Shown here: positions 6,584 to 40,700 of the stretch, in pieces
How the letters are laid out: every line of letters begins with the position of its first letter
Position numbering within the stretch: position 1 is the first letter of the stretch
Assembly: GCF_035594765.1 (NCBI RefSeq)
Contig: NW_026943819.1
Span: forward strand, 1,488,001 to 1,552,000
DNA from: Anolis carolinensis
Lineage: Eukaryota
Direction: 5' to 3'
Length of the DNA stretch: 64,000 bases
Made by a program: the position numbers and the translations under genes
Notes under the pieces: model-generated
The model's database searches: none
What the model was told of the DNA's origin: nothing
The model's input: only the letters and a program-made list of their open reading frames with translations

Positions 6584-8719
6584 TCAGAAGGCCCTGCCCC
6601 CCAGGCCGGCATAGACCTCCCGCTGGCCTTTCCGGATAGGCTGCAAGAGCAAAGAGGGAGGGTGGCTCAGTTGAAAGGACCATAAGCCAGAAAATAGTAA
6701 ACTTTTCCCTATGTAGCTTTGCCTCTGCACATGCCCCTCCCTTCCTGTGAGCTGGTACCTTTCTAAGGGGCTGTTCCAAAGAGAGAAGAAAGCTCAGAGT
6801 AAACAAGTGAGGTCACAGGCATCAAGTAGGTGTGGAAGGTGAGGAAGACCCTCGGCCATTGGTCAATTTTAGATAAGCCAAAGGTATATAATCTTTGTTT
6901 GCTACGCACATGTTGCGACGGCCATTTGCATGGTACGGACCCACTAAAGTGGGTGCCTACAGCTGTTTTGCCTTATCATCAGCTGTGATAACAATAAAAG
7001 GCTTGTTTTATTGCTCTCTTGGGATTCTCTCCTTTTCTTCCCCTCCAGGCTAGTCTCCAACACAGTCGCTGGGACCTTCTCTCAATAGGGGATGCTACCC
7101 AATGGCTTTTTGAGAGACCCCCAAGTGGCTGCCTGGGGAGGCCGCGGGGTCTGGCTAGCCACCCCAGACCCCACCTCCTGCTTCTGGGGGTGTCTCTCTC
7201 TTGGGAGGGGTCTCGGTCCCAAGCAGCCTCCTCCTGCCCTCCTCTCCCCCCAACAAGCCAGTCAGGACTTACCTCGTAGTCTGGGTTTGGGACGGGTGGG
7301 GGGTGATCCGCCTTCGGGCCTGGAACGGAAACCAAAGTGAGTTGGGGGATATGGGGCAGCTGCCTCCCAGCCCCAGTCCTTGGGGAGCCCTCCTTCTCAT
7401 TGGGCAAAAGGCTTCCTCCTTCAACAAGCTGGAATGTGTCCAGAGGAGGACGACTCAAAGGATCAAAGGTCTAGAGAACAAGCCCTATGAGGAGCTGGAT
7501 GGCCATCTGTTGGAGGTGCTTTGAATGTGATTTTTGTTAATGTGGGATTTGTGTATTGATAGTGTTTAAATCCAATTTGTGCCATGCTTGTATTGCAACT
7601 GATTGCATCATCAAGAATGTACCATAGTGTGGAAAGAGTTAATTGCCAAGAAGCTGTGATGACCTTGATGTGTGGCTGGAACTAGGGAGTATCCAGACAC
7701 AAGTATGTGTGTATATTGATTGCGTCAGTTCAGTCGAGTTCTGTCTGCCTAGAGTTTGAGTCAAGTCCTGTGTTCATCTATCGTCTGTTAGTCTGTGTTG
7801 ATACAGTAAAACTTTGTAAATAGTTTTACCAACGTCTCTGAGTGTCTCTTCGTTCCATCAGACTGCTAATACTCTGGCAATTGTCCTGCTTCTTGGCAGA
7901 ATGGGGTTGGACTGGACTCTTTCAACTCTAGGATTCTAGGATTCTCCATAGCCATAGTCTTCCTTCCCCAGCTAACGGGAGAAATCTCAGGACAAGAGCA
8001 TCGCCTTGAGAGCAATGTGAATGAAATGTGTGTGGACATTTTTGTGAGAGATTGTTGTGAACTCTCCTTTTCCTGCCTCCAACTCTTATGTGAACCCCAT
8101 GCTCTTTGCAACCATGAGTGCATCACACTTGATGACACTGTGATGGAATTTCCCCTTGTGACATTGCCAAATCCCTAGTCTGCGGTTCATACAATCATAA
8201 GAGTTGGAAGAGACTTTGTGGGCCATCCAGTCCAACCCTGTCCTGCCAAGAAGCAGGAAAACCGCATTCAAAGCACCCCCGACAGATGGCCATCCATAGC
8301 CTCCAAAGAAGGAGCCTCCACCACACTCCAAGACAGAGAGTTCCATTGCTGCTCTCTCTTTCACACAGGATGAATTACTTTTGATCTTGCAAGGGAAGGG
8401 GATGCAAAGTACTGTATATACTTGAATATAAGCCGACCCGATATAAGCCGGGCCACCTAATTTTACCACAAAAAAACTGGGAAAACATTGACTCCAGTAT
8501 AAGCCGAGGTTGGTAAATTTGAGAAATAAAAATAGATACCAGTAAAATTACATTAATTGAGGCATCAGTAGGTTAAATGTTTTTGAATATTTACAAAAAG
8601 CTCAAATTTAAGATAAGACTGTCCGACTCTGATTAAATCATTATTCTCATCTTCTTCAATGTAAATGTGCTTATGTGTCCTTTTAATAATAATAATAATA
8701 ATAGAGTAAAATAATCCAT

Positions 8720-8778
<59 letters not shown>

Positions 8779-11360
8779 TACAGGAAAAGAATACATGTAA
8801 TAATAAATAGATTAAAATAATAAATGCAATAATAATAAGATCAGAGTGAAATAATAAATGTATTACAGTAGAGTCTCACTTATCCAAGCCTCGCTTATCC
8901 AAGTTTCTGGATTATCCAAGCCATTTTTGTAGTCAATGTTTTCAATATATCGTGATATTTTGGTGCTAAATTCGTAAATACAGTAAATTACAACATAACA
9001 TTACTGCGTATTGAACTGCTTTTTCTGTCAAATTTGTTGTAAAACATGATGTTTTGGGGCTTAATTTGTAAAATCATAACCTAATTTGATGTTTAATAGG
9101 CTTTTCCTTAATCCCTCCTTATTATCCAAGATATTCACTTATCCAAGCTTCTGCCGGCCTGTTTAGCTTGGATAAGTGAGACTCTACTGTAATAATAATA
9201 AAAATAGAGTAAAATAAATGTAATAGTAGCAACAATAATAGAGAAAAATAATAAATGTAATAATACCAATAATAATAGAGAAAAATAATAAATGTACCAT
9301 ATATTCTCGAGTATAAGCTGACCCAAATATAAGCCAACCAGAACCCTCACCCGATTATAAGCCGAGGGGGGCTTTTTCAGTCTTAAAAAAAGGGCTGAAG
9401 AACTAGGCTTATACTCGAGTATATACAGTACATCTTTGTGATAGTTGATGATTCCATTAGAGATGGTGAAGGGGCCATAAGCCAGAAAATAGTAAACTAT
9501 TGCTTATGTAGCTTTGCCTCTGCATATGCCCTTCCCTTCCTGTGAGCTGGTGCCTTTCTTCAGGAAGTTCCAAAGGGAGAAGAAAGATCAGAGTAAACGA
9601 GTTAGGTCATAGGTATCACTTATGGGTGTGGAAGGTGAGGAAGATCCTCAGGCATTGGTCAAATTTTAGATAAGCCAAAGGTATATATTCTTTGTTGCGA
9701 CAGTCTTTTGCATAGTATGGACCCACTAAAGTGGGCGCATACGGCGATTTGCCTTGTCATCAGCTGTGATAACAATAAAAGTCTTGTTTTATTGCTCTCC
9801 TGGGATTCTCTCCTTTCCTTCCAACAATGGAAGGAGAAGCGGCCACTCACCCGGAGGCCTCCCACGGGCGGCTCCCACGCCGTCTCCTCCCCGGAAGCGG
9901 GCTTTGCGGTTCTTGCAGCAAAAGTAGACCAGGCAGAGGACCCCCAGGGTCAGGAGGAGGTCCGAGACGATGATTCCGGCCAGGAGCCCGAGGCCCAGCT
10001 CCACGCAGTCCTGGCAAACTGCAAGAAGGGTCACTCAGTAGGACATCCCGTGGCCTTGCTCTCCTCCCTCCAACCACAGTCTGCCCCCCAGCACAGACCT
10101 TTGACCTTCAGGAAGAGCTTGCTGCTTCCGCAAGTACACTCTTCCCTGCGCTCGACAATATCCGTGAGGATCAAAGGGTTGCGATGCTCCTTCTGATTGC
10201 TACACTGGATTGTTGCATCTGTGGGGCAGCTGAGGGTCACGGTGCCCTTCCAGACGTCCACTCTGATCTCTGAAGAGAAGCAATGAGAAGGCAGTGGGGG
10301 GAGAGGAAGGATTGCATGGGCAAACTTGGGGACTTCAGGTGTTTTGGACTGCAACTCCCACCATTCCTAACAGCCTCAGACCCCTTCCTCCCCCCCCCCC
10401 CCCAGCTGCTTAAGTGGCTGGGGGGAAAATCCAGCACTACGCTGGCAAAGATACTGGTGGGTACTGGCCCCCCCAAGCCCACCCCAGTTGTTTTCCCCAG
10501 TCTACCCAGTGCCTGCTCTTCCCTGAATAAGGGCCCTTCAGTCTTCCCAGAATAAGGGAATAAGGGCAAGAACTGTTCTGAGAAAGCTGCACAGATCCTT
10601 ACCGTTGGCAACGCTGCTGCAAGCAGGGCCAGCTGCAAAAGAAAGAGAAGGCACCAATGAGGAGGACATAGGCATCGCTTGGCAATGGATCTTGGGTGAA
10701 GAACTGAGCTTGCTTCCTTTTTGGACTTGTGGGTCGCAGGGCTCTTTTGGGGACCTTTGTGGGCCCGACTCCAGGAAGCAGAGGGAGAGACCCTGTTGGA
10801 CCCTTGGGCTGAGTCGCTGGGTTGCTGTGAGTTTTCCGGCCATGGAAGCCTCCGACGATACAAAACAGCAGGGTCCTTTCCCCAGCTATCTTTGTTTCCT
10901 TCCTCAAATGGGGTCGGCAGGAGTCCGTTTGTGGCCTTGTCTGGCCTGCGGGCATCACCCCAGAGAGGAAAGCCCACCACTGCTGTCTGGTGGGATTGCA
11001 GGGAAGTGGGTTGGGAAGGCCTCGGCAGTTCTCTCTTCCTATGGAGCATTGTCTTGACCGAAGGGCATCACGCTGTGCTCAAAGGCCCCTTATGCCAAGG
11101 GGAAGGTGGGCTCAGAGCCACAATTGCCCTTCCAGTGCTGGCCAATGCCCCCTGCCTTTCAGGGGTGAGGGTCTTCCCAAGGATGGGATACCCCTTGCCC
11201 TTGCTATAGCTCTGCCCCAATGCCTCTGTCCTCCTCTCCCAGTCCCACATTGCCTACTCTGCATTGGGATGCCAACCCCCCACCCCAGATACACATTGCC
11301 TCCCATGGGATGCTTACAGAGAAGGGCCAGCAAGGCTGCGACAAGGGCCCCGCGACGCAT
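6584..11360 (-). CDS. CD3E: T-cell surface glycoprotein CD3 epsilon chain, 6 coding exons, 171 aa
   Basis: Minus-strand exons 11360-11318, 10632-10603, 10269-10099, 10018-9851, 7319-7273, 6640-6584 (516 nt, in frame). Has the VCQDC stalk, a TM with Asp (GIIVSDLLLT), basic KNRKAR, proline-rich PPPVPNPDY and the ITAM YEPI-x7-YAGL. The 30-nt exon 2 is the least certain. Confidence 0.94.
6672..7062 (+). mobile_element. Solo LTR, family X
   Basis: TG...CA ends, 4-bp TSD CAGT, internal TATA and AATAAA; homologous to 9467-9826. Confidence 0.8.
7535..7879 (+). mobile_element. Solo LTR inserted in a CR1 3' fragment (CR1 about 7422-7940)
   Basis: TG...CA ends, 5-bp TSD ATTTT/ATTGT; the CR1 sequence resumes exactly across the insertion. 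Confidence 0.65.
8412..9428. mobile_element. Tc1/mariner (Tc2-like) non-autonomous transposon containing MITE A; second copy at 25471-26115
   Basis: TIR CTGTATATACT(C/T)GA(G/A)TATAAGCC with TA TSD. Confidence 0.8.
9467..9826 (+). mobile_element. Solo LTR, family X
   Basis: TG...CA ends, 4-bp TSD ATGG, internal TATA and AATAAA. Confidence 0.8.
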
Positions 11361-12095
11361 CTCCCTGCTGGGCCCTCTTTTCCGTGGGGTGAAGGGGCCC
11401 AAGGGCAGAGCCTGTTGCTCGTGACGCAGTGCCAGGCAGGTGTGCTCTCTTCTCTCTCTCTCTCTCGCTCTCTTCTGCAAAAGCGACAGCCCTGCCAGGA
11501 AGTGCAGAAAGGGGGGGGGGCTAAGAAGAGGAGGAGGAAGAGGAAAACCTTTGTCACCTTCAACAAGTGGCCCTGACCTCAGCTCTTCAAATGCTTACAT
11601 TTCAACAAATGCATTCACACCAAATGCATTCATATTCAACCAACACTGACAGCTGGCTCTTCTAAGGATGCCTCCAACTTTGCAAATTGATGGCGAGCTG
11701 CAGAGCAGGCCTGGGCGAACTTCGGCCCTCCGGGTGTTTTGGACTCCAACTCCCACCATTCCTGACAGCCTTGGGCCCCTCAGCCATGACGATAAGCGAA
11801 AATGATTTTGGTCGCTGGTTTATATATTGTTATAATATTGTTGTTTTGCTCTGTCTCACATTCTTGAATTGCATTTTTGTGAAATTACATTTTAAAAACA
11901 GTGTCGTTCGGGCTCATCCCCATGTAAGCTGCCTGAGTCCCTTCGGGGAGATGGAGGCGGGGTACAAAAATAAAATAATAATAATAATAATAAAAATAAT
12001 AATTATTATTATTATTTGTATCACAGAATCACAAGTTGAACACTTCCCAAGTGTTTAGGACTGTGTGATGTATGATCATTATGATTTTGATTTTG

Positions 12096-37764: not shown

Positions 37765-40700
37765 TGTATTTTGTCCAGGTTGGCCATTGCTCTCCTCCCA
37801 AGATGGAAACATCTTCTGATTTCCTGGCTGCAATGATCTTCGCGCCTAGAAATATAAAGTCTGTCACTGCCTCCACATTTTCTCCTTCTATTTGCCAGTT
37901 AGCAATAGGTGTAGTTGCCATTGTTGTTATTGTTAACACATCGACATAGTGATGGCGCAGGGCCAACCAATATTGCTCCATCAAGCACTGCTTTGTTCTA
38001 CTCTCCCCCTGAAGACACAGGTCCACAGTCTGGACTGATCACTGACCCTGGAACCCCAGGTGTCGGTGGTGGCCAGGAGCACCTTTGCACAATTAAAACT
38101 CATGCGCCAGCTGGGCCCGCACCTTGAGATGCCAGATCTGGCCATGGGAGTTCACGCCTTAGTCACATCCCGTTTGGACTACTGCATTGCTCTCTATGTG
38201 GGGCTGCCAGTTTGGAAGCTTCAACTAGTTCACAGATGGGCAGCCAGATTAATAACAGGAGCCCTGTACAGGCAGAGATCCACTCTTCTAAAGGCCATCT
38301 AGTCCAACCCCCTTCTGGCTTCATGCAGGAAAAACATAATCAAACCTTCCTTGCTTAGTTTCTCCATACCTCACAACCTCTGAGGATGCCTGCCATAGAT
38401 GTGGGCGAAACGTCAGGAGAGAATGCTTCTGGAACATGGCCATACAGCCTGGAAAACATACAACCACCCCATAATCAAAGCATCCCCAAAAGATGGCCAT
38501 CCTACCTCTACTTATCTGCTGTGAGCAGATCTGCGTTTTTCCATCTACGTCAGGCTAGGCAACTGGCTCCCTACCTATCTAGGAACGACCTGGCGACGGT
38601 GATCCAGGCGACGGTCATCTCGAGGCTCGACTACTGTAACGCCCTCTACATTGGCCTTCCTCTGTCAGTGATCCGGAAACTGAAGCTGGTGCAGAATGCG
38701 GCGGCTCGTCTTCTCGCCGGGGTGCCGGCGAGGTGGCGTATCACCCCAATTCTTCAACAGCTGCACTGGCTGCCGATCGAGTACCGGATTACTTTCAAGA
38801 TACTGGTACTAACTTTCAAGGCCTTACATGGTCTGGGGCCGGCGTACCTGAGGGCCCGCTTATCCCCCTACCAACCCCAGAGATTACTTCGGTCCAAAGA
38901 CCAAAATTTGCTGGAAGTCCCTAACATACGGACTTATCCTTTGTCTTCTACTAGGCAGAGAGCCTTCTCGATTGTAGCCCCTCAATTGTGGAATGCCTTG
39001 CCAGTTGAAACTCGAACCACCCGAGACCTACTTGCCTTTCGGAAAGCCTGCAAAACCTTGCTCTTCCGACAAGCTTTCAATGGGTGAAAAACTCGGGGCT
39101 ATGTCTGTTTTTATTGTTGCTTTTATTGTTGTTTTTATTGTTATTTTAAAGCCAAGTGTATTGTTTTAATCTATTTTTGTAAACCGCTCTGAGCCAAACT
39201 GGGAGTAGCGGTATATAAGTTTAATAAATATATATAAATAAATAATAGCAATAATAATCATCATCATGATGATTATGATGATTATTGGCCCCTTGCTAAA
39301 CCCATCCTTGGCTCCTTCTCTCACAGTGCCCAGCATCCAGGCCATGGAGGTGATGGCCCCGCCCACCATCTACGCCCTCAACGGCTCCTCCATCCGCCTC
39401 ACCTGCACCTTCAACTCCTGCTACCAGGTGGAGAAGAAGCAGTTCTCCCTCAACTGGACCTACCAGGGTTGTGACAACTGCACAGAAGAGCTGGTGAGTT
39501 TTATCGCAGTGGCAGATCCTCCCTGGGCTTTGTTTTCCTCTCCTCCCCAGGTCCAAGCAGAGACTGGGCAAAGCAGGGGAACTAGACCAATGATGGGCAA
39601 CCTTTTGCACTTGGTGTGTCAAAATTCACCAAAATACCTAGCATGACTTGGGTGGTGTGTCACTTTGAGAAAAAAAAACACCATAATTTTGCAATATGTA
39701 TAGTTTAAATAACAAAAATGTATAATCTATATATAAAAGAGTGATGGCATCACGGCGACCCACAAAACAACAAAACTACAGGCCCCCCAACCTCGAAATT
39801 TGACAACACAACCCATCATCCACGCCTCTAGGTTGATACAACAAAAAGAAAAGAAAAATAAAGTCCTAATTAGAGAGAGAGGAATAATTGTTTTTATCCA
39901 ATTGCTGCCAGTTAGAAGGCTAAGCTCCTCCAACTTGGTCTCCTAGCAACCCAATAAAAAATAATAAAAAACACTAAAAAATTAATACAATAAAATACTA
40001 TAATAACAGAAAATAACTAAAAATAATACAAGAAAATAATAAAATATAATAAATAAAAATATAACTTACAATAAAATTAATAAAAAATTGCAAATAACGT
40101 CAAATAAAAATTACACAACAATTTTTAACCAATACCACCACCACTTTGCCACAGCAACGCGTGGCCGGGCACAGCTAGTATATATATATATAAATGTAAT
40201 GTGCATAATTCCCATGGAGTAAACAACAAAACCACTGGACAAAATCACACCAAATTTGGCCACAAAAGACATAGTCATCCAATCAATCTGCAGGCAGCAG
40301 TGTGTCAGCAAAAATGACTAGGCGTGTCAGTGCTGACACGCGTGTCATAGGTTGGCCATCACTGAACTAGACCCTGGTCCAAGCAGAGATTGGGCAAAGC
40401 ATGGGAACTAGACCCTGGTCCAAGCAGGGGAGCGGGAAAAGCAGGGGGCCGGGCTGTGGCGCAGCTGGCTAGTAACCAGTTGCAATAAATCACTACTGAC
40501 CGAGAGGTCATGAGTTCGAAGCCCGGGTCGGGTTAAGCCTACGACCATTAAAAAAAAATAGCCCCGGCTTGCTGTTGACCTATGCAGCCCCGAAAGACAG
40601 TTGCATCTGTCAAGTAGGGAAAATTTAGGTACGCTTTATACGGGAGGCTAATTTAACTAATTTACAACACCATAAAACTGCCAGCAAAACACGAGGAAAA

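Follow-up and report, generated by a model that had tools for sequence, protein, structure and literature searches.

How can an immunoglobulin (Ig) domain that has lost its core tryptophan, and in which a second core position has become cysteine, be held together? This question is raised by the CD3-epsilon gene (CD3E) of the green anole, Anolis carolinensis, which lies on the minus strand of a 64,000-nucleotide stretch of contig NW_026943819.1 (NCBI RefSeq assembly GCF_035594765.1, positions 1,488,001 to 1,552,000), hereafter called the window. The Ig-domain exon of this gene (window 10269-10099) encodes four cysteines: Cys39 and Cys71, the canonical cysteines of strands B and F, and two further ones, Cys47 on strand C and Cys69 on strand F. 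A preliminary description of this DNA had taken the additional pair as a coordinated replacement of the core Trp and the tyrosine-corner Tyr in a miniaturised domain. Our analysis places Cys47 two residues beyond the Trp column. From the sequence positions of the residues, we predict a second disulfide between Cys47 and Cys69, and we consider the chances of this bond to be evenly balanced.

The gene is a known, annotated and transcribed CD3-epsilon ortholog that is evolving fast. Read directly from the window, it consists of six exons with AG/GT sites and a total of 516 nucleotides (nt), corresponding to 171 codons and a stop (Table 1). The Ig exon, of phase 1-1, measures 171 nt between its cag acceptor and its gt donor. 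It holds 56 whole codons reading IRVDVWKGTVTLSCPTDATIQCSNQKEHRNPLILTDIVERREECTCGSSKLFLKVK, and its first Glu is a split codon composed of a G from exon 2 and AG. This exon was searched by reference to the uninterrupted open reading frame at window 10354-10034, restricted to the exon residues. The sole protein returned was NCBI 'T-cell surface glycoprotein CD3 epsilon chain [Anolis carolinensis]' (P0001, 171 amino acids), which is 100% identical to the exon peptide and was used for the later protein work. The gene, exon and frame of the preliminary description are thus borne out by the translation, by the identity with P0001 and by a spliced RNA contig. Direct translation also returns the four cysteine codons at the positions claimed, Cys47 and Cys69 both as TGT, with 31 residues between Cys39 and Cys71.

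The RNA evidence came from four public runs, which were compared with window 9780-11420. In one spliced contig (X20 record 10), position 11318 is followed directly by 10632 and position 10603 by 10269, and both skipped stretches are bounded by GT..AG when read on the minus strand. This RNA therefore confirms exons 1 and 2, the acceptor of the Ig exon and the frame, and the check for a different exon or frame returned the same acceptor and frame. The Ig exon was covered with 0 differing letters by X16 record 1 (9787-10362) and by X20 records 9 and 10 (two further studies). As independent runs agree in every letter, the two TGT codons are not assembly errors.

To place the cysteines among relatives, a word search with P0001 was performed, which found 436 CD3-epsilon relatives; the best 120 were used, and column counts were made over 118-119 orthologs. 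Cys39 and Cys71 are present in all aligned proteins but one, a truncated Phrynosoma fragment (P0022). The A. sagrei gene (L001) was then codon-aligned to that of A. carolinensis, from the B-strand Cys to a shared GAG CAT. Without gaps, 26/45 codons were identical; with one codon gap per sequence, 34/42 were identical, and 0/2000 codon shuffles reached this score. In the gapped alignment, ATC (Ile45) stands opposite TTC, the Phe in the Trp column, CAG (Gln46) opposite CGG, and TGT (Cys47) opposite CGT (Arg), while AAT CAG is common to both. The sequence from A. sagrei ordinatus (P0002) fits the same shift, with F-Q-Y-R-N-Q against I-Q-C-S-N-Q (Q/Q, N/N, Q/Q) and a Tyr at the Cys47 site. Squamates that possess the Trp carry it at offset 7 after the B-strand Cys, which is the offset of Ile45, whereas turtles and birds carry it at offset 8, which is the offset of Cys47. 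We weighted the codon alignment above MAFFT protein alignments because it reflects the history of near relatives and agrees with the alternating hydrophobic face of Ala43, Ile45 and Cys47, a core-facing pattern. On this alignment, Ile45 is in the Trp column and Cys47 is at the position two residues after it (Trp+2). Trp+2 is Leu in 33 orthologs, and A. carolinensis alone among 118 orthologs has Cys there.

This register changes the interpretation of Cys47. The claim that it occupies the core Trp position did not hold, and the nearness of TGT to TGG, which had been read as a single-base step from Trp to Cys, is a coincidence, as Cys47 lies opposite CGT. Nor was the core Trp removed by a swap in the green anole. 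There is no Trp between Cys39 and Cys71 in this species, and the canonical strand-C Trp is absent, but its position was already taken by a hydrophobic residue in relatives. Besides A. carolinensis, the Trp is missing from Hemicordylus, from Pogona, which has Leu, and from Lerista and both A. sagrei sequences, which at offset 7 have Cys and Phe, respectively, so that its absence is common to A. carolinensis, A. sagrei and Pogona.

In Ig folds, the strand-C Trp lies directly opposite the F-strand Cys, and antibody heavy-chain V domains show the corresponding pairs 36/92 and 38/90. It follows that, on the antiparallel C-F pair, Trp+2 would lie opposite the residue two positions ahead of the F-strand Cys (F-2), and both side chains would face the core. 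Given Ile45 in the Trp column, Cys47 and Cys69 would then be direct cross-strand neighbours, and we infer that this pair offers better geometry for a bond than the diagonal between the Trp position and F-2 that the preliminary description had implied. The latter reading, in which Cys47 replaces the core Trp (I-Q-C equated with mammalian I-L-W) and Cys69 replaces the Tyr in one coordinated swap, appears unlikely. The resemblance of I-Q-C to the hydrophobic-x-Trp sequence of turtles, crocodilians and tuatara (V-T-W, I-T-W) speaks for it, as does the offset that Cys47 shares with the Trp of turtles and birds; the squamate offset, the codon alignment and its shuffles speak against it. Furthermore, Cys47 at the Trp position would directly neighbour Cys71 and not Cys69, Ile45 would pair past the last residue of strand F, which is 71 in the model described below, and F-2 in the nearest relative is Phe, not Tyr.

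We examined F-2 across the orthologs in the same way. Cys69 aligns with Phe (TTC) in A. sagrei and with Tyr in Pogona and Varanus. Leu is the commonest residue (52 of 119 orthologs), followed by Tyr (34), Val (14) and Phe (13); Cys is found in 2, and Ala also occurs. With Tyr in only 34 of these proteins, the tyrosine corner is therefore no rule in sauropsid CD3-epsilon. The assignment of Cys69 to this corner is thus right as to position, two residues ahead of the F-strand Cys, but not as to an ancestral Tyr, which is found in a minority of the orthologs and is replaced by Phe in A. sagrei. Both additional cysteines are absent from A. sagrei, and they therefore arose on the same lineage.

Additional cysteines between the canonical two are found in 6/118 orthologs: one each in Lerista, Hemicordylus and turkey, and two each in A. 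carolinensis, Pelodiscus and Paroedura. In Lerista edwardsae (L003:1561-1800), Cys occupies the Trp column and the Tyr at F-2 is retained. Hemicordylus capensis (L002:4198-4400) reads C-S-C at strand F, with neither Trp nor a C-strand Cys. Each of these two lizards thus has an odd number of Ig cysteines, and in the genome assemblies their Ig exons are intact, with proper splice sites. The idea that the two changes come only as a coordinated pair is not sustained, since independent occurrence is seen in kind: F-2 alone in Hemicordylus and, for the neighbouring C-strand column, the Trp column in Lerista. Pelodiscus sinensis (P0023) and Paroedura picta (P0064) carry their two additional Ig cysteines at positions unlike those of the anole, Pelodiscus having no Trp; these are possibly independent additional disulfides.

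The size of the domain was also compared. The spacing between the B- and F-strand cysteines has a median of 36 residues in 119 orthologs and ranges from 30 to 45 in squamates, with 30 in Hemicordylus, 31 in A. carolinensis, 32 in Sceloporus, 33 in several birds including turkey, and 36 in A. sagrei. Short spacing is common in the orthologs, so that a small domain characterises reptiles and birds in general. The domain had been called miniaturised, and its spacing is indeed only 31 residues, against a human value that we take to be about 48; however, this is not special to the anole. Relative to A. sagrei, A. carolinensis shows an additional 5-codon deletion ahead of strand F, which accounts for its extra shortness.

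To obtain a model of the fold, AlphaFold2 was run on the ectodomain (P0001:21-92) with a 118-row alignment (A2). The model has a mean predicted local distance difference test score of 81.6 and an Ig-like strand order, with strands at residues 27-31, 34-38, 45-47, 51-53, 57-60, 64-71 and 74-83. The top Foldseek matches were CD3 chains, with weak E-values. In VIA-align, the best matches were the CD3-epsilon chains 9C3E_F, 1XIW_A, 3R08_E and 6JXR_f (Z 6.2-6.7, root-mean-square deviation 2.2-2.6 Å, 63-64 residues, 25-27% identity). Model residues 3-66 span residues 33-122 of the human chain, consistent with the larger spacing assumed for the human protein. CD4 domain 2 chains were also among the structural matches, at Z of about 5.3. 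The model and its CD3-epsilon matches agree with a single extracellular Ig-like domain bearing the conserved B-F pair Cys39 and Cys71, and, as modelled, the anole ectodomain is a trimmed CD3-epsilon fold.

On the basis of these positions, we propose the following course of events. After the split from A. sagrei, Trp+2 on strand C would have changed from an Arg-, His- or Tyr-type codon to TGT (Cys47), and on the same lineage F-2 on strand F would have changed from Phe or Tyr to TGT (Cys69). The domain, small as is usual in reptiles and birds, is shortened further by the 5-codon deletion. Alongside the canonical Cys39-Cys71 bond, Cys47 and Cys69 would be joined by a second disulfide, across strands within one sheet, which would help to hold a core that has neither the Trp nor an aromatic residue at F-2. 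The Ig domain has four cysteines, an even number. Cys19, encoded by exon 2, is probably at -2 of the signal-peptide cleavage site, as judged from alignment with PVWG|E-type sites in relatives and from the -3/-1 rule, which would leave these four in the mature Ig domain.

The partner chain was considered as well. The CD3 gamma/delta Ig exon keeps its Trp and encodes only the two canonical cysteines, and it therefore offers no intermolecular partner for the additional anole cysteines; a bond to gamma/delta was set aside on this ground. Another pairing within the domain, Cys39-Cys69 together with Cys47-Cys71, or an intermolecular bond to another chain, is in our view very improbable. Cys69 and Cys71 are on the same face of strand F, and either could reach Cys39; Cys47, if it were at the Trp position, would face Cys71 exactly as in CD4 domain 2. 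On the other hand, Cys39 and Cys71 are found in every full-length ortholog, the gamma/delta Ig exon has no spare Cys, and in CD3 structures strands C and F are away from the G-strand dimer interface.

A number of observations weigh against a stabilising Cys47-Cys69 bond. Several of them suit a different account, in which the two cysteines are incidental by-products of fast, weakly constrained change and are reduced, glutathionylated or partly paired, with no stabilising role; we regard this account as a serious possibility, though the less likely of the two. Between the two anoles, nonsynonymous divergence (dN) is 0.285 in the Ig exon and 0.058 in the rest of the gene, about a fivefold difference, and omega (the nonsynonymous-to-synonymous rate ratio) is about 0.6 against 0.3, both computed from a codon alignment made with MAFFT, in which the Ig value is slightly inflated; this fits relaxed constraint. 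Between the B- and F-strand cysteines, the CD3-epsilon sequences of A. sagrei ordinatus (P0002) and A. sagrei (P0003, L001:3795-3978) show 8 differences in about 37 residues, and they are nearly identical in the transmembrane region and tail, a very high divergence of the ectodomain within a species or subspecies. Trp+2 is highly variable among close relatives, with His in Sceloporus and Arg and Tyr in the two A. sagrei sequences, so that pleurodont iguanians have His, Arg, Tyr or Cys there, and the change from CGT to TGT is a mutationally easy CpG transition. F-2 is similarly free across the orthologs (Leu, Val, Phe, Tyr or Ala). Three orthologs have a single additional Cys, and an unpaired one is tolerated at F-2 in Hemicordylus and at the neighbouring C-strand site in Lerista. 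The Trp+2/F-2 pair itself occurs in A. carolinensis only, and its co-occurrence thus counts once.

Further reservations concern the placement of the residues and the chemistry of the bond. The strand-C register hinges on the placement of one codon gap, and the MAFFT protein alignments, which lack this gap, place Cys47 at Trp+1, where it would point away from the core. Cys19 could survive signal-peptide cleavage, making the Cys count odd. Cross-strand disulfides are strained and require the right kind of strand pair. Set against the incidental account, two core-side thiols on adjacent strands in an oxidising compartment would normally pair. Moreover, the number of cysteines is even, none of the other 118 orthologs compared shares the pair, both changes fall on one short branch, and the letters are identical in three data sets.

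Comparison with known systems clarifies what the proposed bond would add. Other squamate CD3-epsilon chains (A. sagrei, Sceloporus, Pogona, Varanus, snakes and geckos; P0002-P0025) represent the same gene with the same exon layout, CxxC stalk, transmembrane Asp, proline-rich sequence, immunoreceptor tyrosine-based activation motif (ITAM) and short Ig domain, but A. carolinensis alone combines a Cys at Trp+2 with one at F-2, and it has a further 5-residue deletion ahead of strand F. The human and mouse ectodomains (PDB 1XIW, 3R08, 6JXR and 9C3E) resemble that of the anole in the B-F disulfide and in a G strand that runs into CxxC; the human domain, however, has about 90 residues against 64 in the anole, keeps the Trp and the F-2 Tyr, and has one Ig disulfide. 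Chicken CD3-epsilon in the epsilon-delta/gamma heterodimer (PDB 2MIM) is likewise sauropsid, with a single gamma/delta partner, a small domain and a non-aromatic F-2, whereas birds keep the Trp and have no additional C/F-strand Cys pair; the Foldseek match to this structure was weak.

CD4 domain 2 provides a parallel for the bond itself. This Ig-type domain, from another T-cell surface protein, has a disulfide that links strands C and F of a single sheet, as proposed for the anole. This cross-strand disulfide, Cys130-Cys159, was gained stepwise via ortholog intermediates with a single Cys (PMC4354306). The CD4 bond engages the canonical F-strand Cys and takes the place of a B-F disulfide that was lost, whereas the proposed anole bond would be additional and shifted by two residues. 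Redox lability has been shown for the CD4 domain 2 bond. That the anole lineage acquired a strained, redox-labile bond of this type, tuning folding, gamma/delta pairing or signalling by the T-cell receptor complex, seems to us improbable; if it did, nature would here show a structural or allosteric disulfide soon after its origin, with single-Cys states kept in other lizards. A literature search on the structure or disulfides of reptile CD3-epsilon found nothing relevant.

The remainder of the gene is typical of the family. The tail is clearly that of epsilon (PPPVPNPDYE / PIRKGQREVYAGL), and a cytoplasmic proline-rich sequence is followed by the ITAM (PPPVPNPDYEPIRKGQR..Y.GL), with columns that are invariant in 33 orthologs. 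P0001 residues 75-169, comprising the transmembrane region and tail, align to human CD3-epsilon chains in phmmer with E of about 1e-25. The CxxC stalk and the one acidic transmembrane residue are present, and Cys83, Cys86 and Asp101 are invariant among the aligned orthologs. In Pfam, the ITAM scored 20.7 bits, just below the cut-off, and the Ig part scored 15.6 bits for Ig_5 and 16 bits for Ig_4, both below the cut-offs because this part is too diverged. Pfam and PDB sequence searches with the exon peptide alone gave no useful match, with only a chance zf-UBR match in the former and none in the PDB. The gene sits in the CD3 cluster: at about 1.3-2.7 kb of the window, the plus strand carries the Ig and transmembrane exons of CD3 gamma/delta. 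An alternative assignment, in which this gene is gamma/delta because of its CD3-delta-like CQDCVEL stalk and epsilon lies at a plus-strand 'CDNC' at 39470, was ruled out by the PPPVPNPDYE and PIRKGQREVY exons and by P0001.

Table 1. Features of CD3E in the window, with the residues discussed in the text
Feature	Position	Strand	Basis or remark
Exon 1: ATG and most of the signal peptide (MRRGALVAALLALL + 1 nt)	11318..11360	minus	gtaagc donor; matches P0001
Exon 2: 30-nt mini-exon (SGPACSSVAN), contains Cys19	10603..10632	minus	AG/GT sites; both joints in an RNA contig
Exon 3 (Ig): Cys39, Cys47, Cys69, Cys71	10099..10269	minus	P0001 match, RNA contigs, AlphaFold2 strands
Cys39, canonical B-strand Cys	10226..10228	minus	Kept in 119/120 aligned proteins
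Ile45 (ATC), squamate Trp column (by alignment)	10208..10210	minus	Codon alignment with A. sagrei (TTC, Phe); squamate Trp at offset 7
Cys47 (TGT), strand C, Trp+2 (by alignment)	10202..10204	minus	A. sagrei CGT (Arg); A. sagrei ordinatus Tyr
Cys69 (TGT), strand F, two residues ahead of the canonical Cys	10136..10138	minus	A. sagrei TTC (Phe)
Cys71, canonical F-strand Cys	10130..10132	minus	Kept in 119/120 aligned proteins
Intron from the Ig exon to the stalk/transmembrane exon, 80 nt	10019..10098	minus	GT..AG and polypyrimidine tract, read from sequence
Exon 4: stalk (CQDC = Cys83/Cys86), transmembrane helix with Asp101, basic juxtamembrane stretch	9851..10018	minus	
Exon 5: proline-rich sequence and first ITAM tyrosine (PKADHPPPVPNPDYE)	7273..7319	minus	
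Exon 6, last coding exon: second half of the ITAM (PIRKGQREVYAGLGGRAF) and stop codon	6584..6640	minus	

Downstream of the Ig exon, the transcript evidence was different. Contig X20 record 9 (9879-10157) runs without a gap through the 80-nt intron (10098-10019) and is thus unspliced; in the same run, the two larger upstream introns are removed and show no coverage. Read-through of this intron leads to a stop after KVKGLCWGADCGWREESKATGCPTE, with 22 extra residues, and would yield a chain without stalk or membrane anchor; the unspliced intron may be partial intron retention or a low-depth artefact. No spliced junction between the Ig and transmembrane exons was found among the contigs of the runs, the only contig there being the unspliced one. 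The junction as given in Table 1 is based on the NCBI model, on canonical splice sites and on the ...KVK-VC..C sequence, which all orthologs conserve at this point. Contigs from two other organisms (X22 and X23) showed no Ig-exon coverage at a likeness of at least 85% and only a 54-nt transmembrane match. The CD3E introns also contain a short interspersed repeat (..GGAATGGTGGGAGTTGCAGTCCAAAACACC..) at window 10314-10389 and at about 10770-10880 and 11700-11790. In the public runs, the summed contig depth of this repeat reaches hundreds of thousands, with many spurious joints between copies that are not splicing.

Some neighbouring features were recorded as well. The transmembrane and juxtamembrane stretch of anole CD3E (window 9851-10018, minus strand) reads LCLVYFCCKNRK and includes Cys110, Cys115 and Cys116. 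Two adjacent cysteines at the cytoplasmic membrane boundary are also present in A. sagrei and pythons, whereas most species have C-S or F-S; in the anole they are a candidate palmitoylation site. The CD3 gamma/delta gene is arranged tail-to-tail with CD3E, with an Ig exon (..NVTLQC..FTWEKDG..GSFSC..) at about 1302-1733 and a stalk/transmembrane exon (VCQNCIHLDVPTIVGIVIASLVATL) at 2530-2680 on the plus strand. Its Ig domain keeps the canonical Cys-Trp-Cys, and its transmembrane segment has Ser where an acidic residue is expected. At window 39400-39500 (plus strand), an open frame reading ..SCYQVEKKQFSLNWTYQGCDNCTEE.. resembles the final part of an Ig-like exon, with a CxxC-like motif after it; the frame has no relation to CD3E and probably belongs to a neighbouring Ig-superfamily gene of the cluster.

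The possible additional disulfide makes green-anole CD3-epsilon a modestly interesting candidate variant of a known ortholog. If the Cys47-Cys69 bond is real, a disulfide within one sheet would have restored stability to an Ig domain without the Trp and the F-2 aromatic residue, and this in the partner chain of squamate CD3 gamma/delta. Next to CD4 domain 2, it would provide a second and independent example, one that the absence of the pair from A. sagrei would date. If the bond is absent, the two cysteines are one more variable feature of a fast-evolving ectodomain. The 'conserved' rules of the Ig core are loose in sauropsid CD3-epsilon, which bears on annotation, as Pfam Ig_5 misses the domain, and on the choice of antibody epitopes in reptile immunology.

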